A DNA stretch of 64,000 bases, taken from the IMG/VR virus record IMGVR_UViG_3300044641_007115, positions 62,001 through 126,000 of that record, one strand, 5' to 3'. How positions within the stretch are numbered: position 1 is the stretch's first letter; the number at the start of each line of letters is the position of its first letter. The translations under genes were made by a program, and so were the position numbers. Of this stretch, positions 3,104 to 61,118 are shown in pieces. Below the pieces are notes generated by a model. That model saw only the letters and a program-made list of their open reading frames with translations. It ran no database searches and was not told where the DNA came from.

Positions 3104-3361
3104 TTATCGCTCCGTTTGACCGCCCGCGCCCACAATCGGAGCACGCCGGATCATGAATGCGATGGATTCGTCCAGATCCCATACGCCGGGATGACCGACG
3201 ACCAAAGACTGAAGCACACCATTGATCTGATGTTCAAGAGCATCACGCTCCTTGATCCACCGGCGCAAAAGAGTTTGCACAGCGGGTTGAATCGGAAGCT
3301 GGTCGCCTTGTTCGAGTCGGATTTCGGAAGGGGAGTCTTGGTCAACGAAAATAGGTTCCAT
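3104..3361 (-). CDS. hypothetical protein
   Basis: ORF preceded by late-like TCTAAATT 6 nt upstream of ATG. Confidence 0.55.
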   Translation of the reverse strand: MEPIFVDQDSPSEIRLEQGDQLPIQPAVQTLLRRWIKERDALEHQINGVLQSLVVGHPGVWDLDESIAFMIRRAPIVGAGGQTER

Positions 3362-3413
3362 CACTTCAATTTAGACACCACGGAAATGGCATCTTTTGAA
3401 GTGATGGAACCTA

Positions 3414-3632
3414 TTAGACTGGCAGTTGCGATGGTTCGGTCAATTTGGCTTGACACATCATACACGTGTGCTCAACAGCTTGTTCTTCCGTGAACACACG
3501 GCGATACCGGTCCATCGTCACCGGTTCGCCCTTGTGGTTGTTGAACTTGGCGGGCAGACACTTGAAATGCGTGAAACCGCGTTTGGTCAAAGTGCCCGGA
3601 CCACCCAATTCGTAAACCACATGGTATCTCAT
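3414..3632 (-). CDS. hypothetical protein (leaderless start MRYHVVYELGG)
   Basis: ATG 6 nt after a sigma70 -10 element. Confidence 0.6.
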   Translation of the reverse strand: MRYHVVYELGGPGTLTKRGFTHFKCLPAKFNNHKGEPVTMDRYRRVFTEEQAVEHTCMMCQAKLTEPSQLPV

Positions 3633-3638
3633 GACTCC

Positions 3639-3667
3639 ATCATAATGAATCACAAACTATATGTCAA
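3639..3667 (-). promoter_or_regulatory. sigma70-type early promoter TTGACA-17-TATGAT
   Basis: consensus -35 with the phage TTGACATATAG extension. Confidence 0.75.
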
Positions 3668-3906
3668 GCCCCATTTTGGTTGTTGGTGTCGAACTTGATC
3701 CCGATCAGAACTTCGATGCTTTCGATCTTGTGTTTGATCGTTTGCAATTGTTCCGCTACGGACGCCGCGTCCATTTTCACCCACATCCGGCGCAACAACC
3801 GGAACTGATTGTCAATATCGGCAAACAGTTGATCTGCAACGACTCGATTCTCTTCGACGATGTTCAGAAATTTGTTGTGTGGTAATCCTTTATGCGGCAT
3901 GCGCAT
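3664..3906 (-). CDS. hypothetical coiled-coil protein
   Basis: ORF overlaps the stop of the upstream gene. Confidence 0.55.
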   Translation of the reverse strand: MRMPHKGLPHNKFLNIVEENRVVADQLFADIDNQFRLLRRMWVKMDAASVAEQLQTIKHKIESIEVLIGIKFDTNNQNGA

Positions 3907-4666
3907 CGATCCTCAAATGCTTCCTCAAAATGTACCGGGCCAGATCCCGAATGGCTTGCTTATCTGGTTCATCCGGTAGAGAACTTGCGGAAGCTGCTTC
4001 TTTAGATGCTTCTAACAGCCGCAAGATTTCATCCCGGCCTTGCTCATACGTCCACGCGCCTTCGCGGATGGCCTTCAATTCTTCTGCGTCGATCCCGCGC
4101 CGGTCTACCATCAGCACCGCACCATTGCATGAGAAGAACTCTCCGATCATGCGGGCAAGACGAACGGCGTGGTACATGTACTTCGTATCGAAACCGAACT
4201 TGTCACGGATGGCTTTACGCTTGGCACCCATCCGACCAGTCGCCGGGTTGTCTACACCCATCTTCTCAAGCTGGCGGAAAGCGTATCCGGCGAAACTGTC
4301 GATGGCCCTCTTCGAATTGAAAATGCGACGATTTTCGATGAGCACCTGTCCCAACGGGTCAACATGCTCATATTGAGAAACCCACAACAGAGGGATCACG
4401 TTGGGATTGAAATTTTGACAGAGACGCATGAACTTCGTGAGTTCATATGACGTTTCTTCCGACAACAAATTGCCGTCTTCGTCTTTCTCTTTTTTCTCCA
4501 TCGTGCCCTGCGATCCAAACCAGTCGAGTGACAGGTAAACTTGATCGGATGCGGCGACGACTTCCATGAAATCTGTGTCGGATTCCGGTGTCGATGTGCC
4601 ATAAGCATGACTACCGACTTGCGCTCTGATTAGGGTCCTTTCTGGAATTAACTGTGGAACTTGCAT
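3890..4666 (-). CDS. Pol-beta superfamily nucleotidyltransferase (RlaP/YcgL-like)
   Basis: GSHAYGTSTPESDTD motif, NPN, K.MYHAVRL, SSLP..PD. Confidence 0.85.
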   Translation of the reverse strand: MQVPQLIPERTLIRAQVGSHAYGTSTPESDTDFMEVVAASDQVYLSLDWFGSQGTMEKKEKDEDGNLLSEETSYELTKFMRLCQNFNPNVIPLLWVSQYEHVDPLGQVLIENRRIFNSKRAIDSFAGYAFRQLEKMGVDNPATGRMGAKRKAIRDKFGFDTKYMYHAVRLARMIGEFFSCNGAVLMVDRRGIDAEELKAIREGAWTYEQGRDEILRLLEASKEAASASSLPDEPDKQAIRDLARYILRKHLRIDAHAA

Positions 4667-4704
4667 GGGAATATCGAACTAGAGTCCGTATAAACAATCA
4701 TCAC

Positions 4705-5214
4705 ATGGCAAAGAAAACACAACTTTCCTTTTACAAGGTCAATCCCAACGCGGAAGCGCCCGCCTATGGAACCCAAGACTCTGCATGCTTCGATTTCAAA
4801 GCGTGTCTCATCGGTGAACGAGTAAGAGGGTTCGACCGCAACAACAAGGAATTCATCACACCGCTCAGCAACAAAATCGTCATCAATCCCGGCGAACGTG
4901 TTCTGGTCCCGACTGGTTTGATTCTTGACATCCCGGAAGGGTATTCTGTCCGTCTGCACGCCCGTTCCGGGTTGAGTCTCAAGCAAGGTCTGGTCTTAGC
5001 CAATGCGGAAGGCGTCATCGATAGTGACTATGTTGATCCCACGTTCATCATGATTACGAACATGTCCACGGTAATGGCTGACATCAAACACGGCGACCGT
5101 ATCGCACAAGGAGAATTGGTTCCCGTCTACCCGGCAGAGTTCAAGGAAATCAAAGAAGCACCCGGCAAGAAAACTGACCGACAAGGCGGTCTTGGGTCAA
5201 CCGGCGTCAAGTAG
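4705..5214 (+). CDS. dut: trimeric dUTPase
   Basis: motifs ACFD, RSGL, GVIDSDY, RIAQG, RQGGLGSTG. Confidence 0.95.
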   Translation: MAKKTQLSFYKVNPNAEAPAYGTQDSACFDFKACLIGERVRGFDRNNKEFITPLSNKIVINPGERVLVPTGLILDIPEGYSVRLHARSGLSLKQGLVLANAEGVIDSDYVDPTFIMITNMSTVMADIKHGDRIAQGELVPVYPAEFKEIKEAPGKKTDRQGGLGSTGVK

Positions 5215-6350: not shown

Positions 6351-6368
6351 ATCCCATAAATACGTTCG

Positions 6369-7163
6369 ATGCTCAGCTTTCAATCTTTTCTGGCCGAAGT
6401 GTCGAACGCGGAAGCGACCGTAATCAATCTTCTTCGTCTGGCCGATAAACCCGGTACTCCGCAAGAAGGTGCCGTCGCCTTGGCCCAAGCCAAAAAACTG
6501 GCCGCGAAACACGGCTTGAATATCGATGACTTGCGTGCCAAGATGAACGCTCAGCCGCCCCGATCAGCATCCAGCGGCGGATACGATCCACGAAAGAGCG
6601 AAGGTGTGGATGCTGTGTTCGCGATGTGGGAAGCCACCATTCGCGACGCTGATGACCATCATCATGGGTTCCAGTTCACCAAGATGGCCGGTAGTGGTTC
6701 AGACATTTACCGCATCTACAAGAGTTCCAAGTATCCTGATTACGAACTCCGCATCTTCCTCTATCACTTTGAACTGTGGAAGAAAGATCAGGAGATTGCC
6801 AGTGGCACCGGCCACGGTCGAGTAGGCGCATTCCGCATGGTTCTGATTTCGATGGACTACATCAAACGGATCACAGAATGGGCGGAACAAATCCGTACCA
6901 TCGCGGAGAAGGCCGGATACGTGGTCTTCAAAGAACCCGCCGGTCATAACGGATATGAGACATGGTTGCACCACAAAAAGAACAATCGCTTCATCGTGCG
7001 CATCTATGGATACAACACCGACAAAAATGATCGCAGTCGGGGTTCAGCCGTCGCGTTCGATGAGAAGTCCAGTGTACCTATTTTCGCCAAAGCTACAGAA
7101 GACAACCCAAAATCGATCAAGACATTTACCGCCGCTTTGAAAGCCAACAAACCGGTAAAATAG
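6369..7163 (+). CDS. DUF2786-domain protein with capsid-targeting-like N-terminus
   Basis: MLSFQSFLAE; LLRLADKPGTPQEGAVALAQAKKLAAKHGL; late promoter CATAAATA 6 nt upstream. Confidence 0.7.
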   Translation: MLSFQSFLAEVSNAEATVINLLRLADKPGTPQEGAVALAQAKKLAAKHGLNIDDLRAKMNAQPPRSASSGGYDPRKSEGVDAVFAMWEATIRDADDHHHGFQFTKMAGSGSDIYRIYKSSKYPDYELRIFLYHFELWKKDQEIASGTGHGRVGAFRMVLISMDYIKRITEWAEQIRTIAEKAGYVVFKEPAGHNGYETWLHHKKNNRFIVRIYGYNTDKNDRSRGSAVAFDEKSSVPIFAKATEDNPKSIKTFTAALKANKPVK

Positions 7164-7167
7164 AACA

Positions 7168-7482
7168 ATGGAAGGAATCACGACCGATTACTACGATTGC
7201 TCCTGTCACTCTTCGGACCACACGTTGCGGTTCACGCTACACGAAGAGCACATGGGAGACGAACCGGGACTGTACAGTGAAGTACAACTTCAACAATACC
7301 GCCCGTGGTATACGCGCATTTGGCCCGCAATCAAATACATCTTTGGTTACGAATGCCGGTATGGTCATTGGGATTGTTTCCTCTTCGAAAAGGAAACCGC
7401 CATCCGCATGCGCGACTTACTCAACCGGTATCTGAAAATGCTCGAAGAGCACGAAGCTAAGACTTCGCAAGGATCTGATTGA
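7168..7482 (+). CDS. hypothetical phage protein
   Basis: CxCxxxxH near N-terminus; coupled ORF. Confidence 0.7.
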   Translation: MEGITTDYYDCSCHSSDHTLRFTLHEEHMGDEPGLYSEVQLQQYRPWYTRIWPAIKYIFGYECRYGHWDCFLFEKETAIRMRDLLNRYLKMLEEHEAKTSQGSD

Positions 7483-7827: not shown

Positions 7828-9339
7828 CTAATCCTTCGGATCGTTGAATTTGTTCTTGAACTGGTTCATCGCCTTCAGAAGTTCTTCAGCGGTATGGCCG
7901 TCTTTCAACGTCAGCGTGCTGTTGCTACCCATACCCATATTCCAATGTTTCTGAAGTGACCAGCGGCCCGTTTTCGGATCAACCACGGCGAAATACTTGC
8001 CGCCTTTGCTGCTGAAATACTCTTTCGTCGGATCGGGCCGATCCAACACTTTGTCGTCCGGGCGGAATCCGAACTGGCCCAAGATGTTGACGATCTTGTC
8101 GAAACCCATTTCGGCTTTCTTCATCAATGCTGATAGCGACCGCTCTAAGGTGTCGGCATCCTTACCCTGTGCTTTGTCACCCAACAGAGATTTGATGTCG
8201 TGGGCGGGCCGCATACCGCCGCCGGGACCCTCTTTACGGACGAACTCAGCCGTAATCATCCACCAGACTTCATCGTCTTTCTTCATCGCGCCGCGCATCT
8301 TGTTCGGACCAAACATGACCCGAAGCATTTCCACGGTGTTTGTCCAGATGTGCTGATTGCCTTGTTTGTCGAAGGGACGGAATCCGAAACTGGTCAACAC
8401 CTTGACCATGTTGTTGATTTCGTTGTGAACCGAGAACGCGGCTTCTCCGCTCTTTCTCTTTGTTGTCACCCACTTCTCAAAAGATTGTGGTCCTTTGTTC
8501 TTCTGGTCGAAACGCTTTGTGTCCAGTTTCCACTTGTTCGAAGCGCTTCCACCCTGACGGGTTTCGTGCCACCAAGCACCATCCGGCCCGACAATCAGCC
8601 GGTATGGATCACTGACCATTTCGCGGTACGATTCTCCCGTGTTGGCGGGTTTCAAAACATATCCGTGCTTCTCTGCGACTCGAACAACAGCTTCAGCTTC
8701 AGCGGTCAGCTTTTGAGCGTTGTTGTATGCCTTCTGTTCCTTTTCCCGTTGTTCCGCTTCCCGTTTGACTCTCAACCCCTTCCAGTCCACGGAGCGAAGC
8801 GCACCGATCAAATCCTGTGCGTTTGTACTCTTGGCAAGCACGTCATCCTTCGAATAACCGCCCGGACGACCGGTCGGGTCGGCATGGACCAAATACCACA
8901 TGATCGGACGTTCTCTTTCATTCTGGATGGGGAGAACAACCAACACAAAGGTTCCCTCATGAGATACACCCCACACAACAACTTCGGAACCGAACTGAGC
9001 ATAGGTGGTCCCGGAACGCATCCGTTCCCCTTTCCCTTTATGGCGGGCACCGGGGACATGACTCATGATGGTGTTGATTTCGATGAACAGCCGGTCAGCC
9101 GGATGAGTAGACGCGGAATTCGACGGCGACCGGCGCACGCTCTGTTGCTTCATCATCGACCGGGCGACTTCCAGATCGATATTGTTCTTTTTCGCTAGTG
9201 CGGTGGCTTGCGCTAAAGCGACTTCGCCTTCGTGGGGAGATCCGGGACGATCAGCAAGCGCCAATAGCTTGATGATGGTGTCCATCGCGTCCCGTTCGCT
9301 CAGAAGTTGTTCACGAAGATAGGTCAGAAAGCCACTCAT
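7828..9339 (-). CDS. DUF2786-domain protein with repeated C-terminal modules, putative internal protein
   Basis: IIKLLALADRPGSPHEGEVALAQATALAKKNNI; late promoter GGTAAATA 6 nt upstream of ATG. Confidence 0.7.
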   Translation of the reverse strand: MSGFLTYLREQLLSERDAMDTIIKLLALADRPGSPHEGEVALAQATALAKKNNIDLEVARSMMKQQSVRRSPSNSASTHPADRLFIEINTIMSHVPGARHKGKGERMRSGTTYAQFGSEVVVWGVSHEGTFVLVVLPIQNERERPIMWYLVHADPTGRPGGYSKDDVLAKSTNAQDLIGALRSVDWKGLRVKREAEQREKEQKAYNNAQKLTAEAEAVVRVAEKHGYVLKPANTGESYREMVSDPYRLIVGPDGAWWHETRQGGSASNKWKLDTKRFDQKNKGPQSFEKWVTTKRKSGEAAFSVHNEINNMVKVLTSFGFRPFDKQGNQHIWTNTVEMLRVMFGPNKMRGAMKKDDEVWWMITAEFVRKEGPGGGMRPAHDIKSLLGDKAQGKDADTLERSLSALMKKAEMGFDKIVNILGQFGFRPDDKVLDRPDPTKEYFSSKGGKYFAVVDPKTGRWSLQKHWNMGMGSNSTLTLKDGHTAEELLKAMNQFKNKFNDPKD

Positions 9340-9368
9340 AGTAGCTATTTACCATTTCCGGGAACAGT

Positions 9369-9680
9369 TCAGGCTACGGTCCAGACATCCCGCTGATGGT
9401 AGTAATTGCCAATCGCGGACAGAACCGGAGTCAATTCCTTCCGAAGTGATGAAAGATTTACCGACTCCCGGACATCCAGTGTTACGTCCACGATAGCGAT
9501 CTGTGATGTCGTTGGACTCCGATCAATCCACGGGCCGGGCACACGGAACTTCCGTCGAACGAAATTTCCATACCCCCGGTCAAACTTTCCGATGTAGACA
9601 GTCGCATACGGATCAGTCGGTTTTGAAAGAACTGGAATCGCCGCGACGATTGGCAGAGCGAACAATTGCCGTCGTGTCAT
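9369..9680 (-). CDS. hypothetical protein with twin-arginine-like signal (MTRRQLFAL)
   Basis: true start likely 9680, 5 nt after TCTAAGTA. Confidence 0.55.
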   Translation of the reverse strand: MTRRQLFALPIVAAIPVLSKPTDPYATVYIGKFDRGYGNFVRRKFRVPGPWIDRSPTTSQIAIVDVTLDVRESVNLSSLRKELTPVLSAIGNYYHQRDVWTVA

Positions 9681-9699
9681 ATTGCTACTTAGATTAACG

Positions 9700-9825
9700 C
9701 AGGGGCGTGACATCCGGCTTAGCGTACCGGAAATGAAGACTGCCATCGCGCGTCAGGCAATCTAACGTCGGACTGTTGATGGAATGTCCGCGCACCGGTT
9801 GATCGATCACTCAATCAACCACCTG
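9700..9825 (-). ncRNA. candidate structured ncRNA downstream of Ro60 (possible non-canonical Y RNA)
   Basis: own late-like promoter GATAAACT (9838-9831); four hairpins with G-U pairs favouring the minus strand; CAGG/CCUG end pairing. Confidence 0.55.
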
Positions 9826-9855
9826 AGATCAGTTTATCATGATCCCGGTCGGCTG

Positions 9856-9888
9856 AAAAACAAAAAGGCCGGACCCGAAGGCCCGGCC
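9856..9888 (-). terminator. intrinsic terminator GGCCGGGCC-TTCG-GGTCCGGCC-TTTTT
   Basis: stem, UUCG loop and U-tract; identical copies at 50286 and 60557. Confidence 0.9.
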
Positions 9889-9907
9889 AGTTTTGTTCCC
9901 CGCCTGT

Positions 9908-11566
9908 TTAGGCGGTCGTGACTTCCGTTTCGTCTTCCGATCCCGAACGGCGGCTGGTGCCACCGCGCATGAAATCGGCCAACAGAACCGGCACGTTGGC
10001 GTCGAAACCAACGAAGTCCATCATACCCATATCCTTCGGATCGGCGATGGAGAACGGCGTCGCCGCCGTTGCGATGACGGCCAGCTTCGCGTTCGGCTTA
10101 TTCCGTTCCTTGCGGTACTTCACAAGCGCTTGCGACGGCTGGATGCTACCGGCCCAAGTTTCGTTGTCCGTGATTACCGTGAAGCAATCGACGTTCAAGT
10201 TGTTCTTGATGCCGTAGATCATCGGCAACGAACAATCCGTACCGCCGCCAAGACCGCGATTCGCCTTCTTCGTTGCCGATTCCAGCGTATCCTTGGCAGT
10301 GATCTTGAGATCGACGAACTGCGTGTCGAACCCACGGATGTCGTAGTTCTGTTCCGTGCGGATGAATACCATCGCTTGCGCGGCGGCAATCATCGCGTGG
10401 GTCAGAGCCGTACCATTCCAACTCATCGTCATCGAACCCGAAAGGTCGATGCCCACCAAAAGGTTCTGTCCGGTCGGCTCCACGTTGGCGAAGGTTCCGT
10501 AGAACGCATCCATCAACGCATCGACAACCGCCGGAACCACCGTCCACGAACCGTTACCACGCTGACCGTGACCGGCACCATAGGTACCGTAGGCCAGCAA
10601 CACCTGAAGCGGGTGGACCCGCGACCGGCGCAAGTATTCGGCATCGCGCAACCGGCTGGCGACCAGCTTGGAAGCATCAGACAGCGGGGCCAACAGGCCA
10701 GACTTCGACATGTTGCCCAAGTTGCGGATCATCGCAGTCAGCGGCATCTTTTGCAAGAGCGCTTCCTGAACCGTCGCGTCGTTGAGGAACTGAGTCGGAA
10801 TCATTTCGCGCGTCAAACCGTAGTCGGACACGATCTTGATGACTTCCTTGGCCGAAGTTGCCTTCTTTGCCAACTCAACGCCGTCGATCACGCGGGACAC
10901 GTCCGGCTTGTACTCACCCTTGGCCGCGTAACGGTAGATCGCGGAGCGAACTTCGTCTTCCGGCTTCGGGTGCGCCAAACGGAGAATGTCGCGCTGTGCC
11001 CATCCTTCACGCTGTTGGTACTTCGCCAACTGGTAGGCCAGATCGCGGGGCGACTTGGCAGAATACCAGTCCTTCACAGCACGGGCCAGAACAGCACCCC
11101 AACCGCGAAGCGAAGTTGCGTAGGAAATGAACGAAAACAGATGCGTGCCCGTGCGCGCGACCACCGGCAACTTGGACGCCGCGTACTGGCGCGTCTCAAT
11201 GACCGGGGAGTCGGTCGGGGACATGGCAAGTGCCAGCGCAAACAACGCCGGATCGTTCTTCGGTGCCCGGCCCGCGTCGCTGATGCCAGCGATCACATCG
11301 ACCGTGCGCTTACCGTCTTCCTTCAGACAGGCGATCACGTTCTTCGCGTGTTCGCGGGTCAGCTTTTCCGCCGAACCACCACTTGCGTAGTAGGCCGGGT
11401 TCTCAGACCCAAGGATCAGGAAGCGCTCCAAGAGCGTCCACTTATCGACGGTGAAAACGAATCCACCGTGGGCGTTCTGCGCCATTTCATTCTCACGTCC
11501 CGGAATCGGCTGATTCTGCGGGGTCGTCTTCCGGCTTGCGCCGTGCAAGCTATAGATGTTTGCCAT
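9908..11566 (-). CDS. rsr: Ro60 / TROVE-domain RNA-binding protein (Rsr orthologue)
   Basis: NAHGGFVF, LERFLILGSE, RTGTHLF, KYQQREGW, ALIRNLG-like AMIRNLG, RVHP, vWA DLSGSM, GGTDCSLPM, ITDNETW, DFVGFDA; start M8 after AAGAGG. Confidence 0.95.
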   Translation of the reverse strand: MANIYSLHGASRKTTPQNQPIPGRENEMAQNAHGGFVFTVDKWTLLERFLILGSENPAYYASGGSAEKLTREHAKNVIACLKEDGKRTVDVIAGISDAGRAPKNDPALFALALAMSPTDSPVIETRQYAASKLPVVARTGTHLFSFISYATSLRGWGAVLARAVKDWYSAKSPRDLAYQLAKYQQREGWAQRDILRLAHPKPEDEVRSAIYRYAAKGEYKPDVSRVIDGVELAKKATSAKEVIKIVSDYGLTREMIPTQFLNDATVQEALLQKMPLTAMIRNLGNMSKSGLLAPLSDASKLVASRLRDAEYLRRSRVHPLQVLLAYGTYGAGHGQRGNGSWTVVPAVVDALMDAFYGTFANVEPTGQNLLVGIDLSGSMTMSWNGTALTHAMIAAAQAMVFIRTEQNYDIRGFDTQFVDLKITAKDTLESATKKANRGLGGGTDCSLPMIYGIKNNLNVDCFTVITDNETWAGSIQPSQALVKYRKERNKPNAKLAVIATAATPFSIADPKDMGMMDFVGFDANVPVLLADFMRGGTSRRSGSEDETEVTTA

Positions 11567-14903: not shown

Positions 14904-15110
14904 CTATCCCAAGCGAAAACTGACAACTTTTCCTTCATTCACCGTGAAGGTTACACGGTTTTGTTTCACGTCATTGGTTAACGGGACCGGCATGCCGGGT
15001 TGAATCACGCGCACTTCCATGCCTAGCTGTGTCGCTTTCGCTGTGGCTTCGGTGATCGGCTGTCCCATGAAATTCTGTTTGACGGCAATCGCTAAGGCTT
15101 CATTCAACAT
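14904..15110 (-). CDS. I78/potato-inhibitor-I-like peptidase inhibitor
   Basis: RVIQPG..LTND...NRVTF.V..G.V....G. Confidence 0.55.
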   Translation of the reverse strand: MLNEALAIAVKQNFMGQPITEATAKATQLGMEVRVIQPGMPVPLTNDVKQNRVTFTVNEGKVVSFRLG

Positions 15111-15369
15111 CTGGTTCTTCCTCTTCATCTTCTTCTTCGTCTTCATCAGGTTCCCGGCTGAGCCAAAGAACAATGACCAATACCAACGCACTGATAGAAA
15201 CAAACGCTCCTGACCATGCGGCAATCACAACAACCGGATTGGACGGGAATGTGTGAATGGACCAATTGACAGAAACGTAGAGCGCTGTCAATAGCAGGAT
15301 AAGAAGATTGATCCCACCGAAAACAGCGGCGTATTCAGCAATGCGTGAACGGATTTTGTCGGGTTGCAC
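15100..15369 (-). CDS. membrane protein with acidic tail
   Basis: two TM segments; GTG 6 nt after TCTAAATC. Confidence 0.7.
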   Translation of the reverse strand: MQPDKIRSRIAEYAAVFGGINLLILLLTALYVSVNWSIHTFPSNPVVVIAAWSGAFVSISALVLVIVLWLSREPDEDEEEDEEEEPDVE

Positions 15370-15384
15370 GTGATGGATTTAGAC

Positions 15385-16880: not shown

Positions 16881-17459
16881 ATGCTCGAAACAATGCTGGC
16901 TCTAACGGGCCTTGCGTTTTGGACGGTTGCAATCGGCACCGTCATTTTCTGTCTCATCATTATGGCCTTGGTAGAGTACAACCGGCCATTTTGGGCGACG
17001 ACCCTGATGATCGTCACGATCAGCGGATTGGTGTTCGTTACCAAGTACCCGCTGTGGGACGAAATCCGTGCAAACCCTCTTTTGCTGGTCTACTGGACCA
17101 TCGGCTATTTGCTGATCGGTGCCGGTTGGTCTTTATTCAAGTGGTGGCGGTACGTGGATCGGACTGTCAAGCGTTGGTCGAAGAGCGACTATTCCGGTCA
17201 TAAGCGAAATCTGGAAATGATTCGGTCAGCGGATTCAGATTCTACGGTCCAACTGCCATCGGAAATTGATCCGGGGAACAACAAGGATCGTTTCTTCGGC
17301 TGGACCTTATACTGGCCCTTCTCCGGGATCTGGACATTACTGGATGATCCGCTCCGGGCGGCGTTTGAGTTCATGTATGAACAGTTTGGTCAAATCTATA
17401 CCAAGATCGCTCAGCGTGTGGCCCGGCGGATCGCTTCGAGTGTCAAACTGACATCCTAA
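16881..17459 (+). CDS. multi-pass membrane protein
   Basis: three N-terminal TM segments; Y..IGAGWS.FKW; W.LYWPFS. Confidence 0.75.
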   Translation: MLETMLALTGLAFWTVAIGTVIFCLIIMALVEYNRPFWATTLMIVTISGLVFVTKYPLWDEIRANPLLLVYWTIGYLLIGAGWSLFKWWRYVDRTVKRWSKSDYSGHKRNLEMIRSADSDSTVQLPSEIDPGNNKDRFFGWTLYWPFSGIWTLLDDPLRAAFEFMYEQFGQIYTKIAQRVARRIASSVKLTS

Positions 17460-17467
17460 ACACGAAC

Positions 17468-17938
17468 ATGGTACTGGAAGACTACGCGGCTCTGGCAGAC
17501 AAAGAGCTTCGGATTGATGTGACGCGGCTTGTCGAAGAAGCCGCGTCCATCGCCTATCTCCACGGTCGGTGGATGAAGTTCTACGAAGAAGAGAAGAGGC
17601 AATTCCGCCGGATGAAGCGGGAAGTCGCCAAGATGTACACGAAGCGGTTCAACTTCTATCGCGGCACCGGCGACCCTGATGATTTTCCGAATGAGCGCCC
17701 GCCGGATTTGATTCTCGATACATCCATGAAGACCGGCACGAAGAAGCGTAGCCATACGCCGGTCAACGTGGTCGAAATGTACATGGAATCCGACGATCTG
17801 TATCAGGACATGAAAGACAAGCTGGAAGATCAAGAAGTTCTTTTGGACTATCTCGAACAATGTCTCAAGGGTATTGCCTTCCGCCGGAACCAGATCGATA
17901 CCATCAACGAAACCCGCAAGTTCGAGTTTGGAAGGTGA
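17468..17938 (+). CDS. uvsY: recombination mediator UvsY
   Basis: size, FY.G motif, C-terminal R..QI...I...KF..G; synteny with uvsW. Confidence 0.85.
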   Translation: MVLEDYAALADKELRIDVTRLVEEAASIAYLHGRWMKFYEEEKRQFRRMKREVAKMYTKRFNFYRGTGDPDDFPNERPPDLILDTSMKTGTKKRSHTPVNVVEMYMESDDLYQDMKDKLEDQEVLLDYLEQCLKGIAFRRNQIDTINETRKFEFGR

Positions 17939-18831: not shown

Positions 18832-18874
18832 ATCCCGCGTCTAGTGCTCAAAATGGCCGCGTATAAACACATGC

Positions 18875-21677: not shown

Positions 21678-21685
21678 ATGGATGT

Positions 21686-46667: not shown

Positions 46668-47144
46668 ATGGTTTTAGTGCAAGTTACAGCCTTCTACACC
46701 CGCCGAATGGTTGATCCTAAATCGGCTGATTTCCTTCAACAGTGGTTCGATGAAAATGAGATACCGAATACCATCCCGGTAGACCAACTTCACTGTTCGG
46801 TCATCACGGCGATGGAAGAGATTCCTTCCTATCGACCCGATCCGGTGCCGGTGTTGATCCGCCCCAAAGAATACCGGCTCACGTTCCTGAAGGAAGCACT
46901 GGTTATCGCGTTTGATTCGCCGATGTTGAAGCGGGCTTGGGACCGGGCGGTCCAGATGGGTGTGGGGCTGAAGTATCCAAAATACGTGGGGCACGTGAGT
47001 GTATCCTACTCCGTGCCCCTTGAGTTTGAATTGTCCGAAGTGAAACCGCCTACGTTTCCGATCCGGCTGTTAGCCGAAGAGTCCGCGCCGGTCACTCCAC
47101 TGTGGTTTAGTGCAAGCCCAACTTCTGAACCTGTAGCGGCGTAA
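46668..47144 (+). CDS. acb1: 2H phosphodiesterase, anti-CBASS Acb1 / T4 gp57B-like
   Basis: two HxS motifs (LHCSV, GHVSVSY) in Acb1-like context; start may be GTG 46677. Confidence 0.75.
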   Translation: MVLVQVTAFYTRRMVDPKSADFLQQWFDENEIPNTIPVDQLHCSVITAMEEIPSYRPDPVPVLIRPKEYRLTFLKEALVIAFDSPMLKRAWDRAVQMGVGLKYPKYVGHVSVSYSVPLEFELSEVKPPTFPIRLLAEESAPVTPLWFSASPTSEPVAA

Positions 47145-47886
47145 GTGCCCACTTACTATCCATATCAAGTTCACCATTGCTGCGGACTAGTTCTTGATAC
47201 CACTTACCTCTTTTGGTCTTGTAGACATATGCTCCTTTGTAACCATTAGACCGGTCTTTTTTGCCTAGTGCCGTCATGAACTGTGATGTGGTGAAAAACT
47301 TGTAGTCCGCGTATTCATTGCCGAACTTCTTGAAGTGTTCGTCCGCGTCGATGCCTTCCGTCAATTTGCCTTTCGGTTCAAACGAATTGGCAAACGATGT
47401 AATCGGCGACCGGCTACCACGACCCTTGTTGTAATCGGACGGCCACGGCATGCGCTGATTAAACTTCGCATCCTTTTCCGCCTTGCTCATCGGTTTCTTT
47501 TCGACTGCCTTGAAGCCTTTGTGGTCCGGGTTGGGTTGCGGCGTCACAATCCCGCCAATGCTCTTGGCGTAGTGATTCGCGGCATTTTTGTCAGCGAATT
47601 CGCGCGCACCGACCCACACATGCTGTGGAGCTTCTTTCAGCTTTGCCGCGTTGGTCCATTCATCGACTTTCTGTTGCTTGGCGGCTGAGAACAAATCGAT
47701 TTCCGGGTTGATGATGATGTCTTCTTTTTCGCCGGACGGTTCAGACAGTTCTTCTTGGTCGTCTTCGTTTACTTCCGCACAGCCGCATGTGCCAGCTTCG
47801 TCGCCGCATACTTCACATACCGGCATGTTGTCAATCACTTCGCGGATCGACTTTAGAACGGCTTCGTCAACTTGCATGAGGTTCAT
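47107..47886 (-). CDS. late protein, probably virion-internal
   Basis: GATAAATA 6 nt upstream of ATG; LxE-type processing-like sites. Confidence 0.6.
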   Translation of the reverse strand: MNLMQVDEAVLKSIREVIDNMPVCEVCGDEAGTCGCAEVNEDDQEELSEPSGEKEDIIINPEIDLFSAAKQQKVDEWTNAAKLKEAPQHVWVGAREFADKNAANHYAKSIGGIVTPQPNPDHKGFKAVEKKPMSKAEKDAKFNQRMPWPSDYNKGRGSRSPITSFANSFEPKGKLTEGIDADEHFKKFGNEYADYKFFTTSQFMTALGKKDRSNGYKGAYVYKTKRGKWYQELVRSNGELDMDSKWALTPLQVQKLGLH

Positions 47887-48002
47887 GTTCTTTATTTATC
47901 GCCCGGCGTTGATATCCAAGAACATATAGCCGATCCACCCCCACCCCTACCCCTCGAAAATGATGTGTCTCTAAATAGAATTGGAGGTTTCCTCAAGACA
48001 AT

Positions 48003-50264
48003 ATGAGTTGGTCACTAACACAACCACCCAATTGGGTACCGGATGCAATCGCGACGGATCGTGGATGGGTTGATCCCGCCACGGGCGAATTGATTGTTGC
48101 AATTCGTGGATTGAACGTCAAGAATGCTGGTCCCGCCGTCGTGAAGGTTTCACGTATCGGCAACATCACAAAGTATGGCCGGACGACTACACTGTCGTTC
48201 CGCGTCAAGTTTAACGAAGTCGTCGTGGTTACGGGTACGCCGCGTATCCCATTGACGATTGGTGCGAATAGCAGTTTGTTTGCGACGTATGCATCTGGAA
48301 CCGGCTCTTCGAGCTTGGTTTTCAGCTATGCGATTCAGAACGTCGATTCTGGCGCGATTTCGATTGCAAGCCCGATTGCTTTGAACAGCGGCACGATCTT
48401 GGATGCGTCAAACACCCCGGCGGTGTTGACCTTTACCCCGCCGAACACGGCGGGCATGACGGTAGACACCACGTTGCCGACCGCTGATGATTCGGAAGAC
48501 ATCACCCCCACGGCTTTTGTGACAGGAGACAACATCGATGTCATCGTCAATTTCAGTGAGCCGGTGGCTGTGACTGGTGTTCCGCGCGTCGAACTGGATT
48601 TTAACGGAACTCAGAAATTTGCGAATTATGCATCAGGTTCCGGTACCAGCGCTTTGACGTTCCGGTACACCGTACAAGAAGCTGACTCGGTTAATGCTGG
48701 TGATTTCGATGTTGTGAACACGACGGGTGATGCAACCATCGACTTGAACGGCGGTACGATCAAGGACTTGGCTGGTAACTCAACCGGTACGCCGGACTTT
48801 ACCATTCCGACCAACTTGGCGTCTGTTTCGGTGAATTCGACTGCCGCCCCGACGATTACGGGTGTGACGTTCGATTCCGGCAACGGCCCGCACAGCTTGG
48901 CGAAGACCAGTCTTCTGAACTTCACGGTCAACTTCAGCAAAGCTGTTGTTGTGACTGGTTCTCCGCGCATGACTCTTTCGGTCAACGGAAACGCCAAGAA
49001 CGCCACCTATTTGAGCGGATCTGGTTCGAAGGCTTTGGTCTTCCAGTATGCTGTTGTTTCGGGTGACAATGCGACGGCTAGCCAGTTCAGTGCTTCTAGC
49101 CCGTTGACGTTGAACGGCGGAACGATCAAGGACATCTACGGCACTAATGCCACATTGTCCTTCACCGCTCCTACCACTTCAGGCGTTGTGATCGACAACA
49201 CAGCACCCGCCGCTCCGTCTGTTGCATTCGTACAGGGTGCGGGCAACTACAACGCTGGCGACGTGTTCGAGTTCACGGCAACCTATGTCGGCAATATCGC
49301 CGTGGTTGGTTCGCCGCGCATTCCGTTCACGATCAACGGAGTTCAGCGTTATGCGTTGTTCTCAAGTGTTGCATCGAACGTAGCGACGTTCTCTTACACG
49401 GTTCAGGCGTCGGACGCCGCGACCAGCGGTCAGATTGTCTTGACTTCGCCTATCGATTTGAATGGCGGAACGATCAAGGATCTGGCGGAAAACAATGCTG
49501 TTGTGACCTTCACCCCGCCGTCGATGTCGGGTGTTGTGATCGACAACGTTGCGCCGGTCATCAACACGGTGACGGGTCCGTCCGGTGGTCCGAACTACAA
49601 GTTGGGCGACACGTTGACCTTGACAGCGACCTTCAGCGAAGCTGTTACGGTTACGGGCACCCCGCGCATTGCGATGGACGTGAACTTCACGACCAAGTAT
49701 GCGACCTACGCTTCGGGAACTGGTACTTCGACTTTGACCTTCACCTACACGGTGGCGTCGAACGACAATGCCAATTTGCCGGGTCAGTTCGCACTGATTT
49801 CGCCGATGCAATTGAACGGTGGAACGATTGTGGACGCCGCTGGCAACCCGATCACGAACCTCAGCTTCAACTTGCCGGACAATTCCGCCAAGCGTGTTGA
49901 CGGCGTGGCACCGGCATCCCCGGTTGTTACGATCAGCGGCGACACGGCCAATGCGTTTGTCACTGGCAACGTGTTGACCTTGACGGCAACCTTCAACGAA
50001 GCTGTAGTGGTGACCAACACTCCGCGTATCGCTGTGACTATCGGTAGCAATACCCGTCAGGCGAACTACGCTTCGGGTTCTGGAACCAATGCGTTGGTCT
50101 TCCAGTACACCATCGTCGGTGGCGACAGCGCAACGGCTGGCAACGTCACGACGGGCGCGGTGATCGATCTGAACACCACGGGAACGGTCAAGGACGTGGT
50201 TGGAAACAACGCTACCTTGTCCTTCTTGCAACCCAACTTCATCGTCGCAAAGACGGTCAACTAA
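48003..50264 (+). CDS. virion surface protein with about six tandem Ig-like repeats
   Basis: repeated F.E.V.VTG.PR...A.YASGSGT..L.F.YTV...LNGGTIKD..GN unit of ~120 aa; late promoter TCTAAATA. Confidence 0.8.
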   Translation: MSWSLTQPPNWVPDAIATDRGWVDPATGELIVAIRGLNVKNAGPAVVKVSRIGNITKYGRTTTLSFRVKFNEVVVVTGTPRIPLTIGANSSLFATYASGTGSSSLVFSYAIQNVDSGAISIASPIALNSGTILDASNTPAVLTFTPPNTAGMTVDTTLPTADDSEDITPTAFVTGDNIDVIVNFSEPVAVTGVPRVELDFNGTQKFANYASGSGTSALTFRYTVQEADSVNAGDFDVVNTTGDATIDLNGGTIKDLAGNSTGTPDFTIPTNLASVSVNSTAAPTITGVTFDSGNGPHSLAKTSLLNFTVNFSKAVVVTGSPRMTLSVNGNAKNATYLSGSGSKALVFQYAVVSGDNATASQFSASSPLTLNGGTIKDIYGTNATLSFTAPTTSGVVIDNTAPAAPSVAFVQGAGNYNAGDVFEFTATYVGNIAVVGSPRIPFTINGVQRYALFSSVASNVATFSYTVQASDAATSGQIVLTSPIDLNGGTIKDLAENNAVVTFTPPSMSGVVIDNVAPVINTVTGPSGGPNYKLGDTLTLTATFSEAVTVTGTPRIAMDVNFTTKYATYASGTGTSTLTFTYTVASNDNANLPGQFALISPMQLNGGTIVDAAGNPITNLSFNLPDNSAKRVDGVAPASPVVTISGDTANAFVTGNVLTLTATFNEAVVVTNTPRIAVTIGSNTRQANYASGSGTNALVFQYTIVGGDSATAGNVTTGAVIDLNTTGTVKDVVGNNATLSFLQPNFIVAKTVN

Positions 50265-50317: not shown

Positions 50318-50351
50318 CAACAGTCTCGTTTCGCGAAGAGTAAATATCGGT

Positions 50352-51839
50352 GTGAAACGGATAATCTACGAAGCCCCGACGTGTGACCCCAACCATGTCG
50401 TTACACAATCAGATTTGGATGCTCTTGAACGGCATCTGGACAAAGTATGGAACAAGTTGGGGATCGATATTGCCTTCACGCGGCATTTCTTGGACCGGGT
50501 GAACGACGCCCGGAACGGAAAACAGATCACGCTCTGTGAACTGGCCCGAATTTTTCTGGAAACATTCCGTCAACACGGAAAGAAGTTGACCGGCATCAGC
50601 ACCCGTGATTGGGAAGCTGTGTTGTCAGACAAGATAACGAATGTGAACGTGCCGTTCGTTCTGAAACATAATGGCAAAGAAGTGGAGATCGTGGCGAAGA
50701 CGGTGATGCGGAAGCCCAATTTCCACACGCCCGATCCGAAATTGGTAGTGGCGCATTTCCGTCAGGGAGACAACAAGATGTCGAAAACATTGCGTGAGTG
50801 GACCGGTCTAGGTCTGCCTCAGAATGATCCTGTGGCCGGTGTCTATGCCGTCGATGATGTCGATGTCAACCCGTCCCAAATCGATGACCCGGAAGTACTC
50901 ACGATGTTGAACGGCTTCCTTGCGTCATTGACCAAGAAAACGTTCATCAACCCGTACTACCCGGTACAACAGGCGTTTGCCAAACTGAGCGCGGTCGGAC
51001 TTTCCTTCCAGCTTCGTGGTTTGGATTTGGGCGGCGATACGGGTGTGGTGCTCATCCCGGTTTCTCATTTTGGTGGTCGTTTGGGGCGGAACCTTGATGG
51101 GTCTTGGGCGGACAACGATGGAATTTCAGAGAAGATCCCCGGCGGCATTTTCCTGAAGGTCACTTACACACAAACCAACGGAGAGTTTGTGGTGAACATG
51201 CAGTTGGTCCCGGCGGAAGAAGGTGTGGAACTGGACACCACCGACATCGAAGAGGATGTCACTACCGGCACGTCCGATGCGACGACTGATGAGTATCCGT
51301 TCGATTCTGATTTCCAACCGACACAAGACGGAGAAACCATTTTTGATGCGGTGAACTTCGAGTCGTTCATTCAGAGGGGCCGGAAGATTGCGGAAGCAGC
51401 AAATAGTATCACTGTCAAGCCTTCGACGCGGAAGAAGGGAATGTATGATGTCATCGTCGGAAACATCCCACGGGTCACCAAGCCCACTGTGAAGGGTGCC
51501 AATGGTTATGCCAGCCGCATCGCCAAGGAAAATCCGCATATGAGTTTCACCCCGCTCAAAGAAGCGGAACTGAACGAAGCGGATGCGAAAGTGGTGTTGA
51601 ACATTCCCGGCGTTCCCTCGAACTATGCCAATTTACCGCTTGGTCGAAAGATGGATCATCACGCCGCCATCAAGAAGTTCAAGGATGAAGCCAAGCGTAC
51701 TCACTTCGGTGCAAAGGGCAAACCGATCATGAAAGCCTTTGGAGAATTCAAGCGACTAAACAATGTTAGCCAATGGTACTTCTTGGATCGCGGGCCGCAA
51801 GGGATGAAAGACGATTCCGTGGAGATTTGGTACAAGTAA
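50352..51839 (+). CDS. conserved T4-like multidomain late protein
   Basis: FTRHFLDRVND.RN, AKTVMRK domain; GTAAATA upstream. Confidence 0.7.
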   Translation: MKRIIYEAPTCDPNHVVTQSDLDALERHLDKVWNKLGIDIAFTRHFLDRVNDARNGKQITLCELARIFLETFRQHGKKLTGISTRDWEAVLSDKITNVNVPFVLKHNGKEVEIVAKTVMRKPNFHTPDPKLVVAHFRQGDNKMSKTLREWTGLGLPQNDPVAGVYAVDDVDVNPSQIDDPEVLTMLNGFLASLTKKTFINPYYPVQQAFAKLSAVGLSFQLRGLDLGGDTGVVLIPVSHFGGRLGRNLDGSWADNDGISEKIPGGIFLKVTYTQTNGEFVVNMQLVPAEEGVELDTTDIEEDVTTGTSDATTDEYPFDSDFQPTQDGETIFDAVNFESFIQRGRKIAEAANSITVKPSTRKKGMYDVIVGNIPRVTKPTVKGANGYASRIAKENPHMSFTPLKEAELNEADAKVVLNIPGVPSNYANLPLGRKMDHHAAIKKFKDEAKRTHFGAKGKPIMKAFGEFKRLNNVSQWYFLDRGPQGMKDDSVEIWYK

Positions 51840-54333: not shown

Positions 54334-54366
54334 ATCTGAAGGTATCTATCATAAAGAGAGTCTTCA

Positions 54367-58668: not shown

Positions 58669-60534
58669 ATGAATAAAGACTGGTCTAATCTTGCGAAGAT
58701 TGTCTATCGCAGAACGTATTCCCGACGTGATACGGGAGTTTTAGAGGGATGGAAAGAGACGGTTGACAGAGTGATCGCCGGGAACACCCGAACTGTTCCG
58801 GTGAGCGATCAAGAGAAGGAACGATTGCGGTATTTCATGATGAACCGCAAGGCGATTCCTGCCGGTCGCGGCTTGTGGTTTTCGGGTGCTCCGTCGCATG
58901 AGAAGATCGGCGGTTGTGCTCTGAACAACTGCTACTACTTCAACACAGCCGACTGGAACAACTTCGTGATCGCTCAAGACATGTTGATGTTGGGCGGCGG
59001 TGTTGGCATGAGTGTTGAGAACCGGTTCGTGTCGAAGTTGCCCAAGGTCAAGCGTGATGTCACGATTGTCCACAAGGACACGAACGATGCCGACTACATC
59101 GTGCCGGACTCCCGCGAAGGTTGGTGTGAGCTAACGCGCCGCGTGCTCGAATCGTTCTTCGTGACCGGAAAGTCCTTTTCGTATTCCACGGTTTGCATTC
59201 GTGGATATGGTCAGAAGATCAAAGGGTTTGGTGGTGTTGCATCCGGGCCGATTCCGTTGATTGGCTTCGTGGAGAAGCTGTGTGCCATTCTCAAGGAACG
59301 GGAAGGCAAGCATATTCGCCCGCTGGACGCGGCGGACATGATCTGTGTCACTGGTGAAATGGTCGTTGCTGGCAATGTCCGCCGTTCTGCCATCATCGTT
59401 CTTGGCGATCCTTACGACAAGGTGTATTTGGCGGCGAAACGCTGGTCCCTTGGCAACATTCCGACGTACCGGGCCTTTGCCAATTTCAGTGTCGTTGTAG
59501 ATGATGTGGAAGACCTTCATCCAGCGTTCTGGAAGACCTACGAAGATGGTGAACCGTTCGGTATCGTCAACCGCACGAACATCCAGAAGTATGGCCGTAT
59601 GGGTGAGTTGAAGCCGGATACAGCGGAAGGCGTCAATCCGTGCGCTGAAGCGACATTGGAGTCGGGTGAGAACTGCAATCTTCAGGAACTCCCGCTGATG
59701 AATCTCGAAGACGAAGGGGAATTCATTGAAGGCGCGCGGCTCATGCATCGGTATGGTAAGCGTGTTGCGATGGAAACCTACCATCAGCCGTCGATTCAAT
59801 CCGTTGTGCATCGGAACATGCGTATCGGGACCGGCATCACGGGATGCTTGGCAAGCCCGCTGTTCAACCCGAAGACGTTGGATAAGGTCTATGCCGCTAT
59901 CCAAGATGAGAATGTTCGCTACTCCAAGGAACTGAAGGTGCCGGAATCGATCCGCACCACGGTTGTCAAGCCGTCCGGCACGGTCAGCAAGTTGCTTGAC
60001 CAGCAAGGATATGAAGGCATTCATCCGGCGTTCTCCCGCTACATCATCCAGCGTGTGCGCTTCGCGGCGAACGATCCGTTGATTCCGATTCTTCGTGCTG
60101 CTAAGCATCAGATGGAACCGGTGATCCGTTTCGATGGCACCTACGACAACAACACGATAGTGGTAGACTTCTACGTCGAAGCACCGGAAGGCATGCCGGT
60201 CGCTGATGAAGATTGGGATACGTGGAAGCAACTGGATGTCGTCAAGATGGCCCAAGAACATTGGGCGGATCAGTCGGTGTCTGTGACGGTCTACTACAAG
60301 AAGGAAGAGATCCCGGAACTGAAGGCGTGGTTGGCTGAGAATCTTCAATACATCAAGACGATCAGTTTCTTGTGTCATTCTGACCACGGGTTCAAGCAAG
60401 CCCCGAAGGAAAAGATCAGCAAGGAGCAATTCCAGCGTTTGTCTTCGCGGGTCAAAGCTATCGACTTCGATCAGATTGCCGAAGGTGATTTGGAGTCTCA
60501 AGAATGTGTTTCGGGCGCTTGCCCGATTCGCTAA
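58669..60534 (+). CDS. nrdJ: class II (adenosylcobalamin-dependent, monomeric RTPR-type) ribonucleotide reductase
   Basis: RTYSR, GRGLW, NNC, GNVRRSA, NPCAE, KPSGT, C-terminal C.SGACP. Confidence 0.85.
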   Translation: MNKDWSNLAKIVYRRTYSRRDTGVLEGWKETVDRVIAGNTRTVPVSDQEKERLRYFMMNRKAIPAGRGLWFSGAPSHEKIGGCALNNCYYFNTADWNNFVIAQDMLMLGGGVGMSVENRFVSKLPKVKRDVTIVHKDTNDADYIVPDSREGWCELTRRVLESFFVTGKSFSYSTVCIRGYGQKIKGFGGVASGPIPLIGFVEKLCAILKEREGKHIRPLDAADMICVTGEMVVAGNVRRSAIIVLGDPYDKVYLAAKRWSLGNIPTYRAFANFSVVVDDVEDLHPAFWKTYEDGEPFGIVNRTNIQKYGRMGELKPDTAEGVNPCAEATLESGENCNLQELPLMNLEDEGEFIEGARLMHRYGKRVAMETYHQPSIQSVVHRNMRIGTGITGCLASPLFNPKTLDKVYAAIQDENVRYSKELKVPESIRTTVVKPSGTVSKLLDQQGYEGIHPAFSRYIIQRVRFAANDPLIPILRAAKHQMEPVIRFDGTYDNNTIVVDFYVEAPEGMPVADEDWDTWKQLDVVKMAQEHWADQSVSVTVYYKKEEIPELKAWLAENLQYIKTISFLCHSDHGFKQAPKEKISKEQFQRLSSRVKAIDFDQIAEGDLESQECVSGACPIR

Positions 60535-60556
60535 ACTGAGAGCGATTCCGTCAAGA

Positions 60557-60583
60557 GGCCGGGCCTTCGGGTCCGGCCTTTTT
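60557..60583 (+). terminator. intrinsic terminator (copy 3)
   Basis: GGCCGGGCCTTCGGGTCCGGCCTTTTT. Confidence 0.9.
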
Positions 60584-60617
60584 GTGTCTAACATACGGGT
60601 TCCTGTAAATATCGGTG

Positions 60618-60899
60618 ATGGCAGAACCGATCAGCATTTCCGTGGAGTTTGCTTCGTATAGCCGCACCAAGGACAACGAATATCTTGGCGAAGAGAAATT
60701 CACCGGCACTCGTTTAACACAATTGGCGCATAGCATCGCGGCGCATCTTCTCCCGCTCGAACGGTTCCATTCCGGTGTCGAATTTGAGATCGTCTCCTAT
60801 CATCGGCATGACGTGTCTTTCGACTCCCGGTGCAAACGACAACTGGAAGGAATGACGGAGCTTTTTCGAGTCCTTGTAGATCAAGTACTTAAGAGATAA
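60618..60899 (+). CDS. hypothetical late protein
   Basis: ATG 6 nt after TGTAAATA. Confidence 0.6.
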   Translation: MAEPISISVEFASYSRTKDNEYLGEEKFTGTRLTQLAHSIAAHLLPLERFHSGVEFEIVSYHRHDVSFDSRCKRQLEGMTELFRVLVDQVLKR

Positions 60900-60944
60900 C
60901 CGCACTTGTATGTCAAAAATTGCGGACGCCTAAACAGTGTCAGC

Positions 60945-61118
60945 ATGAGTGACTTTCGGAAACTTAGCATCATTTGCCAGTACTGTGAATCGACGTTTGT
61001 GTTGCGATTCGACGAAGCCTTTGACGGGCCACAATTCTGCCCATTTTGCGGAGAGCCACTGGACCTAGAAGAAGATGACGATGACCTAGAACCAGCGGAT
61101 GAGGATGATGACGACTAA
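60945..61118 (+). CDS. small zinc-ribbon protein with acidic tail
   Basis: CQYC...CPFCG followed by a D/E tail. Confidence 0.7.
   Translation: MSDFRKLSIICQYCESTFVLRFDEAFDGPQFCPFCGEPLDLEEDDDDLEPADEDDDD

Follow-up and report, generated by a model that had tools for sequence, protein, structure and literature searches.

Start-codon-adjacent putative gp55-type promoter boxes and predicted leaderless transcripts in an uncultured freshwater T4-like phage

Late transcription of phage T4 is a textbook system, and to our knowledge all described T4-type late mRNAs carry a leader with a ribosome-binding site. For the Thermus phages phiYS40 and P23-45, the middle and late transcripts are reported to be leaderless for the most part. 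The T4 late box TATAAATA is located at -13 to -6 (PMC1524935; PMC2988020), CTAAATA is a natural late-promoter variant in phage Aeh1, and degenerate late boxes have been documented in Aeh1, RB49, KVP40 and S-PM2 (PMC1524935). For cellular genes, a -10-type signal approximately 10-12 nucleotides (nt) before the start codon is an accepted computational marker of leaderless expression (PMC3160421), which was experimentally confirmed in Deinococcus (PMC12340547). Here, we describe a window of 64 kb (bases 62001-126000 of a single 224,490-bp contig, IMG/VR record IMGVR_UViG_3300044641_007115; GC 52.7%) from an uncultured freshwater T4-like myovirus, in which a short box with the core TAAATA lies immediately before the start codons of many genes. 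We found that the box is well supported as a predicted gp55-type promoter and that the genes behind it are best explained as being expressed from leaderless mRNAs, a reading to which we give a probability of roughly two in three (about 0.68). Coordinates refer to the window unless they are marked as genome coordinates or carry a contig name.

The enrichment tests covered the whole 224,490-bp genome on both strands and were independent of gene calls; a start codon was taken to open a long open reading frame (ORF) when at least 60 amino acids (aa) followed. The hexamer TAAATA occurred in 55 copies, of which 19 had a long-ORF start after 5-6 nt and 33 after 5-9 nt, and control hexamers showed no spacing peak before such starts. 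At 11-12 nt before a long-ORF start, TAAAT ranked first among all 1024 pentamers (35/115, 30%; binomial p 8e-26) against a background median of 2.8% and a 95th percentile of 5.2%, and TAAAC ranked fourth (13/131, p 1e-4). An RTG followed TAAATN at a spacer of 5 or 6 nt at 37 of 115 sites compared with 7.7 expected. As 35 of these 37 RTGs opened ORFs of at least 60 aa, the possibility that the RTG belongs to a DNA motif and does not serve as a start codon was ruled out. De novo k-mer enrichment upstream of ORF starts also returned TAAAT as the top word, with GGAGA/AGGAG second.

Our own gene model contains 305 genes, and the box helped to choose start codons in its final set. In this model, TAAA(T/C) was present 4-10 nt ahead of the start codon in 58 genes, approximately one fifth of the total, with a spacer of 5 nt in 21 genes, 6 nt in 18, 7-10 nt in 18 and 4 nt in one; measured from the first T of the box, the distance to the start codon was 11-12 nt in 39 genes and 13-16 nt in another 18. 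Substitution analysis revealed a working core of TAA(A/G)(T/C)N, in which the first three positions were essentially fixed, and the box consensus was (C/G/A)(C/A)TAAATA, never with T at octamer position 2. Among the 55 perfect TAAATA sites, 29 abutted a start codon, ten lay 11-54 nt upstream of a gene start and three were sense-intragenic; most of the ten preceded genes led by a Shine-Dalgarno (SD) sequence, including the sheath, tube, scaffold and capsid genes. The idea that the TAA of the box is merely the stop codon of the upstream gene was rejected, as this was the case for only 8 of the 58 box genes.

A sequence-only reading of the window had cited twelve boxes of this kind, named the genes of UvsY, UvsW, gp44 and gp43 among their targets and stated that an SD was lacking. 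All twelve boxes were found where it had placed them, each followed by ATG or GTG after 5-6 nt and by an ORF of 75-862 aa. The positional enrichment that it implied was recovered by the tests above, the four gene identities were confirmed by profile and homology searches, and the missing SD proved to be a real avoidance, with anti-SD pairing in the box genes weaker than in random sequence. We also found box genes in the window beyond those twelve, at 731, 3361 (minus strand), 4705, 39170 (minus strand) and 60945. The start-adjacent boxes of the window were as follows.

718-733, plus strand: box ACTAAATG, 5-nt spacer, GTG of ORF 731-1441 (236 aa)
3359-3375, minus strand: box TCTAAATT, 6-nt spacer, ATG 3361 of ORF 3104-3361
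4689-4707, plus strand: box TATAAACA, 8-nt spacer, ATG of ORF 4705-5214, head of a divergent unit
6355-6371, plus strand: box CATAAATA, 6-nt spacer, ATG of ORF 6369-7163 (264 aa, phrog_421)
9337-9353, minus strand: box GGTAAATA, 6-nt spacer, ATG 9339 of ORF 7828-9339 (503 aa)
15367-15383, minus strand: box TCTAAATC, 6-nt spacer, GTG 15369 of ORF 15100-15369, head of a divergent unit
17455-17470, plus strand: box CCTAAACA, 5-nt spacer, ATG of uvsY
18862-18877, plus strand: box TATAAACA, 5-nt spacer, GTG of the UvsW-type helicase gene
21673-22177, plus strand: unit with box CCTAAATG, 5-nt spacer, ATG 21686, ORF to 22135 and terminator
29986-30001, plus strand: box ACTAAACA, 5-nt spacer, ATG of gp44; the TAA of the box is the stop codon of gp45
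31680-31695, minus strand: box ACTAAATA, 5-nt spacer, ATG 31682 of ORF 31455-31682
39168-39219, both strands: divergent 46-nt intergenic space with two back-to-back boxes
within 39168-39219, minus strand: box CATAAACT, 9-nt spacer, ATG 39170 of a 5'-3' deoxyribonucleotidase gene
within 39168-39219, plus strand: box GGTAAATT, 6-nt spacer, GTG 39217 of the gp43 DNA polymerase gene
47884-47900, minus strand: box GATAAATA, 6-nt spacer, ATG 47886 of ORF 47107-47886
50339-50354, plus strand: box AGTAAATA, 5-nt spacer, GTG of ORF 50352-51839 (495 aa)
60604-60620, plus strand: box TGTAAATA, 6-nt spacer, in-frame ATG 60618, ORF to 60899 (93 aa)
60929-60947, plus strand: box CCTAAACA, 8-nt spacer, ATG 60945 (57-aa ORF), the weakest member

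Two possible box variants outside the strict pattern were also observed, one at 7154-7170 (GGTAAAATA, 5 nt and ATG 7168) and the other in a 33-nt divergent intergenic space at 54334-54366 (CATAAAGA, 9 nt and ATG 54367).

The identification of the box as a predicted gp55-type promoter is well supported by its sequence and by its distribution. The core TAAATA corresponds to octamer positions 3-8 (-11 to -6) of the T4 box, with positions 1-2 degenerate, and no -35 element was found, as an alignment of 39 sites was without information content between positions -25 and -3 ahead of the box. The phage encodes the late-promoter machinery, with gp55, gp33, gp45, gp44 and gp62. Divergent units were headed by 26 of the 58 box genes compared with 44 of the 247 other genes, and in four divergent pairs, including 39170/39217, the intergenic DNA of 46-50 nt held two boxes facing opposite ways. 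In particular, the capsid, scaffold, sheath and tube genes had the same box 25-45 nt upstream together with a strong SD, and at that distance the box cannot act as a ribosome site. The presence of the box on virion genes is the T4 late pattern, and its presence on replication genes goes beyond T4. The late timing is assumed here; the boxes of the polymerase and clamp-loader genes suggest a combined middle-plus-late class, as would be expected if the phage lacks the MotA/AsiA middle mode. No matches to AsiA, MotA or RegA were found in genome searches that had no positive controls, so that their absence is only suggested.

According to the proposed mechanism, the gp55/gp33/gp45 machinery would recognise the six-base core TAA(A/G)(T/C)N, which closely precedes the start codon at about 40-58 genes, and RNA polymerase would begin with the purine of that codon or 1-4 nt ahead of it. 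Such a message would leave no room for an SD and would be translated by an SD-independent route that relies on a 5'-terminal start codon. Since the box ends at -6, +1 falls on the first start-codon base with a 5-nt spacer and one base earlier with a 6-nt spacer. We found a pyrimidine at -1 in 33 of 39 box genes compared with 129 of 247 other genes (p 1.4e-5), and the start codons of the box genes always began with a purine, TTG never being used. GTG starts were found in 12 of 21 genes at spacer 5, 4 of 18 at spacer 6 and none of 18 at spacers 7-10, compared with 24 of 247 other genes (Fisher p 7e-7). This link between GTG and spacer is expected if leaderless initiation is correct, because the first base of the codon would also be the initiating nucleotide, and it is hard to explain otherwise. 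The start codons themselves were independently supported by PHROG/tblastn alignments, which began at residues 1-5 for UvsY, gp44, gp43, portal, gp4, gp53 and tail tube.

The box genes also differed sharply from the other genes in their pairing with the anti-SD. The mean duplex energy was -1.6 kcal/mol for box genes, -2.3 kcal/mol for random genomic positions and -4.7 kcal/mol for other genes, and an energy of -6 kcal/mol or stronger was reached by 3% of box genes compared with 43% of other genes. The classes of genes with a close box included UvsY, UvsW, gp44, gp43, terminase, portal, gp48, gp53, gp4, baseplate, tail and tail-fibre genes. The leadered form is exemplified by the major capsid gene, in which GCTAAATA is followed by 20 nt, AGGAGA, 5 nt and ATG, and two leadered boxes lie in the window.

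41847-41905, plus strand: box GCTAAATC, 48 nt before the uvsX ATG at 41903, with the SD TAGGAGAC in the leader
47970-48005, plus strand: box TCTAAATA, 25 nt before ATG 48003 (753-aa ORF), with GGAGG in the leader

A further promoter type was found in approximately 35 early-type units genome-wide (for example, genome 165917-220178), in which cTTGACATATAgGTC is followed by about 9 nt, gcTAtTCT and then the leader tatGGAGAGAcgacATG. These early promoters are of the sigma-70 type (TTGACA, 17 nt, TAtTCT) and always come with a GGAGAGA SD leader; the near identity of the leader suggests a shared regulatory target. A generic scan for sigma-70 promoters and terminators did not rise above shuffled controls, and only individual sites were used. 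One example from the window is given below, and other copies of the cassette were located near 3664 (minus strand), 5224, 25760, 37514 and 62560.

32511-32562, plus strand: early promoter with TTGACAtataggtc, N and TATTCT, then a short leader, a GGAGAGA SD and ATG 32560

Additionally, palindromic early cassettes (TTGACATATATGTCAA) were observed, in which divergent early genes are separated by a back-to-back pair of opposed -35 boxes. The start codon of gp55 is directly abutted by GGACATATAAGTCA (20659-20675), which is half of the early-promoter motif, and no matching -10 follows.

Three expression designs appear to be present in this phage. In early genes, a sigma-70-type promoter would be combined with a leader of approximately 13 nt and a strong SD. 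Genes for replication, recombination, terminase, portal and baseplate proteins, which are middle and late products of moderate copy number, would have the box fused to the start codon. For the very abundant virion proteins (capsid, scaffold, sheath, tube), that box would stand before a leader of 25-45 nt and be joined by a strong SD. Because the early genes depend on the host and yet are SD-led, the host appears to be SD-using. The sequence-only reading had offered the translation style of the host as a possible cause of the box arrangement, and this finds no support, as the host-dependent early genes all carry the strong GGAGAGA SD. Dosage would be a more economical reading, with the leader and SD kept for abundant virion proteins and lower-copy proteins being leaderless.

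The conservation of the box cores suggests selection. In a relative with a 95% identical gp43, we found no change at 36 core positions (0/36), compared with a divergence of 12% at other intergenic positions and 28% at third codon positions. In a 71%-identical relative (L015), the intergenic region at gp43 had diverged except for the two boxes and their spacers. A search with the portal protein yielded further relatives. In L023, a contig of 280 kb whose portal is 64% identical, the close-box architecture recurred at 12 sites within 21.7 kb; L026 and L027 had it at some genes, and L024 and L025 had mostly the leadered form in the region sampled. The spacing peak was absent from Melnitz, S-CAM3 and the early region of a T4-like phage when these were analysed in the same way. 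The late region of that T4-like phage contained 13 TATAAATA boxes 14-29 nt (one 73 nt) before annotated starts, nearly all with an evident SD in the leader and none within 10 nt of a start, whereas the boxes studied here lie mostly at 5-6 nt and lack an SD. From these comparisons, the start-adjacent box would be a trait of this lineage.

The public gene calls of relatives appear to misplace box-adjacent starts (L024:4657-4704; proteins P0005 and P0006); for the L024 portal gene, the called start lies 45 nt ahead of the ATG behind TCTAAATA and reaches into the early promoter next to it. Searches of sequencing runs returned lake DNA metagenomes and three wastewater runs labelled as RNA. Wastewater libraries labelled RNA-Seq (X24 and X25) gave short contigs, without read ends, that were 90-95% identical over window 38500-44400. 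This material is probably DNA of relatives, which therefore occur outside lakes.

When compared with T4 late promoters, the boxes share the core, the lack of a -35 element, the attachment to virion genes and the encoded gp55, gp33 and gp45, and the classical pattern of leader and SD is kept at the capsid, sheath, tube and scaffold genes. The differences are that the first two octamer positions are not conserved here, as in the CTAAATA of Aeh1, and that the box also precedes gp43 and gp44. The sequence-only reading had proposed pervasive leaderless late transcripts from relaxed gp55 promoters, with mRNAs beginning at the start codon even for replication genes, unlike T4. This is supported in part, by indirect evidence: the box behaves as a gp55-type promoter, replication genes are included, and +1 is predicted on the start codon or 1-4 nt before it. 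"Pervasive" has to be qualified: about one gene in five is concerned, and a leader with a strong SD is retained by the most abundant virion proteins. "Unlike T4" applies to the spacing and to genes 43 and 44 but not to uvsW and uvsY, which already have late promoters in T4. "Relaxed" is a fair term for octamer positions 1-2 and 6-8, although boxes of the CTAAATA type were already known from Aeh1 (PMC1524935).

The arrangement also resembles that of leaderless genes in Actinobacteria and Deinococcus-Thermus, in which an element lies approximately 11-12 nt upstream, an SD is missing, starts are ATG or GTG (PMC3160421; PMC12340547) and public gene callers tend to misplace starts. Those genes use the primary sigma factor of the host (TANNNT), whereas the box here is of the gp55 type and the sigma-70-type promoters of the phage are all SD-led. 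A likeness to phiYS40 and P23-45 lies in the later temporal classes being largely leaderless and another class not. These are unrelated phages, said to have hosts rich in leaderless mRNAs and promoters for host sigma, whereas the host here appears to be SD-using.

Several observations weigh against leaderless expression of the box genes. The 18 genes with 7-10-nt spacers imply leaders of 2-5 nt and are not strictly leaderless; GUG-initiated leaderless mRNAs are translated poorly in E. coli; and the AT-rich spacer of T4 was not found, the spacer being 47% A+T. A polymerase and clamp loader made solely from clamp-activated late transcription would face a start-up problem, which needs either sufficient basal gp55 transcription or other promoters. 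Finally, a same-strand gene lies upstream of 32 of the 58 box genes, within 15 nt in 13 of them, and the TAA of the box is the stop codon of that gene in the eight cases mentioned above, with 8-9 nt between the genes. Such close neighbours mean that read-through polycistronic mRNAs and translational coupling could serve some box genes.

If extended to most of the box genes, this becomes an alternative in which the boxes are real gp55 promoters and most protein comes from longer transcripts started upstream, with translation by termination-reinitiation coupling or weak SD-independent internal initiation and leaderless mRNA as a minor by-product of packing. Besides the neighbour counts, gp44 would suit it, being located 8 nt after gp45 and downstream of the early promoter at 25760. 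We consider this alternative unlikely, because the 26 box genes that head divergent units, many with 34-62 nt of intergenic DNA, have no other conserved element there, and because compaction alone produces neither the -1 pyrimidine, nor the GTG enrichment at spacer 5, nor the SD avoidance. The unit at 21673-22177 also stands alone, running from box to ORF to a terminator with a 12-bp stem at 22151-22177 followed by a T run, and is thus self-contained.

Leaderless initiation could itself be part of a larger strategy in this freshwater T4-like clade, with two translation regimes, SD-led for early genes and leaderless for gp55-driven genes, that allow a late shutdown of SD translation. Once the early phase is over, SD-dependent translation of host genes and of the phage's early genes alike could be shut down or outcompeted by the phage. 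This would involve a putative factor aimed at the SD, the anti-SD or the leader tatGGAGAGAcgacATG common to the early genes, with leaderless messages still being translated. The spacing between promoter and start codon would serve as a built-in dial for protein copy number. We regard this larger strategy as quite unlikely.

The boxes might instead be -10-only promoters for the primary sigma factor of the host, with a geometry identical to that of TANNNT-led leaderless genes in Actinobacteria and Deinococcus (PMC3160421; PMC12340547). This is improbable, as the sixth position of the box is A in 26 of 39 sites and T in only 5 of 39, where TANNNT has a near-invariant T. The sigma-70-type promoters that the phage does use look different and are always SD-led, and the box accompanies virion genes, like the late promoters of T4, in a phage that encodes gp55 and gp33.

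It is likewise improbable that, instead of being a promoter, the A/T-rich box acts as a signal for translation at the mRNA level, for example as an enhancer that binds S1 or stays unstructured and takes the place of the SD. The box does occupy the position of the ribosome site and stands in for the SD in box genes, and the first 40 nt of their ORFs fold weakly; however, this folding is equal in SD-led genes and does not discriminate between the two. At the SD-led capsid, scaffold, sheath, tube and uvsX genes, the box is 25-48 nt upstream and thus beyond the ribosome footprint. It is not complementary to the 16S 3' end, agrees with the late promoter known for the family of the phage's own gp55, and marks the heads of divergent units, which require a promoter. 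A chance pattern, or an artefact of choosing starts near TAA-containing words, is rejected even though the box aided start-codon choice in the final gene set, as the enrichment tests were free of gene calls, the start codons were confirmed by profile alignments and three comparator phages analysed alike lacked the peak.

The contig was assembled from lake-water metagenomes and has a CheckV completeness of 96%. Its best protein identity to any cultured phage was approximately 40% (gp43 and gp55); gp43, encoded at 39217-41805, showed 40% identity to Synechococcus myovirus polymerases. The replication and late-transcription genes identified by PHROG profiles in the window were as follows.

17468-17938, plus strand: UvsY (phrog_231, E 4e-24; alignment from residue 1)
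18875-20392, plus strand: UvsW-type helicase
20673-21251, plus strand: gp55 late sigma factor (phrog_234, E 3e-54), without a close box
29265-29990, plus strand: gp45 sliding clamp (phrog_223, E 1e-49), SD-led, with ggagagca ahead of the ATG
29999-30940, plus strand: gp44 clamp loader
31042: gp62

The window also contained gp47, gp46, a peptidase and CobS, identified by PHROG profiles. A gp33 homologue adjoins gp59 by synteny (E 4e-6 to Melnitz gp33) and is the weakest of the four machinery assignments. An 89-aa box gene at genome 44409 was considered as gp33 and rejected, as it encodes a tail-fibre-type protein and gp33 is located elsewhere. The gene order UvsY, UvsW, gp55, gp47, gp46, peptidase, CobS, gp45, gp44, gp62, then gp43, UvsX and gp41 matches that of Kyanoviridae (marine cyanomyoviruses, pelagimyophages and phage Melnitz), including the order in marine cyanophage S-CAM3; a further likeness to this family is that MotA and AsiA were not detected here. 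The phage studied here differs from the family in its GC content of 52.7%, its approximately 40 tRNAs and the lack of psbA, none being found in the genome.

The tRNA genes lie in four clusters (L002, L003, L005 and L009; genome 34.8-39.2, 129.8-138.5 and 209-212 kb), and ARAGORN also reported an odd tRNA with a two-base anticodon at L009:11912-12000. A permuted tmRNA was found at L003:8855-9219 (minus strand) with the tag ANSNVLAMAA; it is closest to the betaproteobacterial type, below the Rfam threshold for that family, and a permuted tmRNA is present in phage Melnitz as well. A gene for a Ro60/TROVE plus vWA protein lies at 9908-11566 (minus strand) and is followed by a strong terminator and then by a 568-nt gene-free stretch (9340-9907) with an unusually stable fold (z -3.5) and no Rfam match, which may be a Y-RNA-like partner RNA. 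NUDIX and nicotinamide phosphoribosyltransferase genes are adjacent at 33908-36245 and look like an NAD salvage pair. Other genes in the window encode ThyX (55915), a class II ribonucleotide reductase (58669) and a UDP-glucose dehydrogenase-like protein (53497, minus strand).

No report linking leaderless mRNAs with T4-like late promoters was found in the literature searched, and leaderless T4-type late genes, as predicted here, have probably not been described previously for T4-like phages. If the prediction is correct, SD-independent translation would carry a large share of the programme of a virulent phage in an apparently SD-using host, and the spacing between box and start codon would be a simple rule separating high-copy from lower-copy late proteins. 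Standard gene callers would then be expected to misplace starts in such phage genomes, as is visible in the relatives, and compact divergent promoter pairs would become available for studies of gp55-type initiation.

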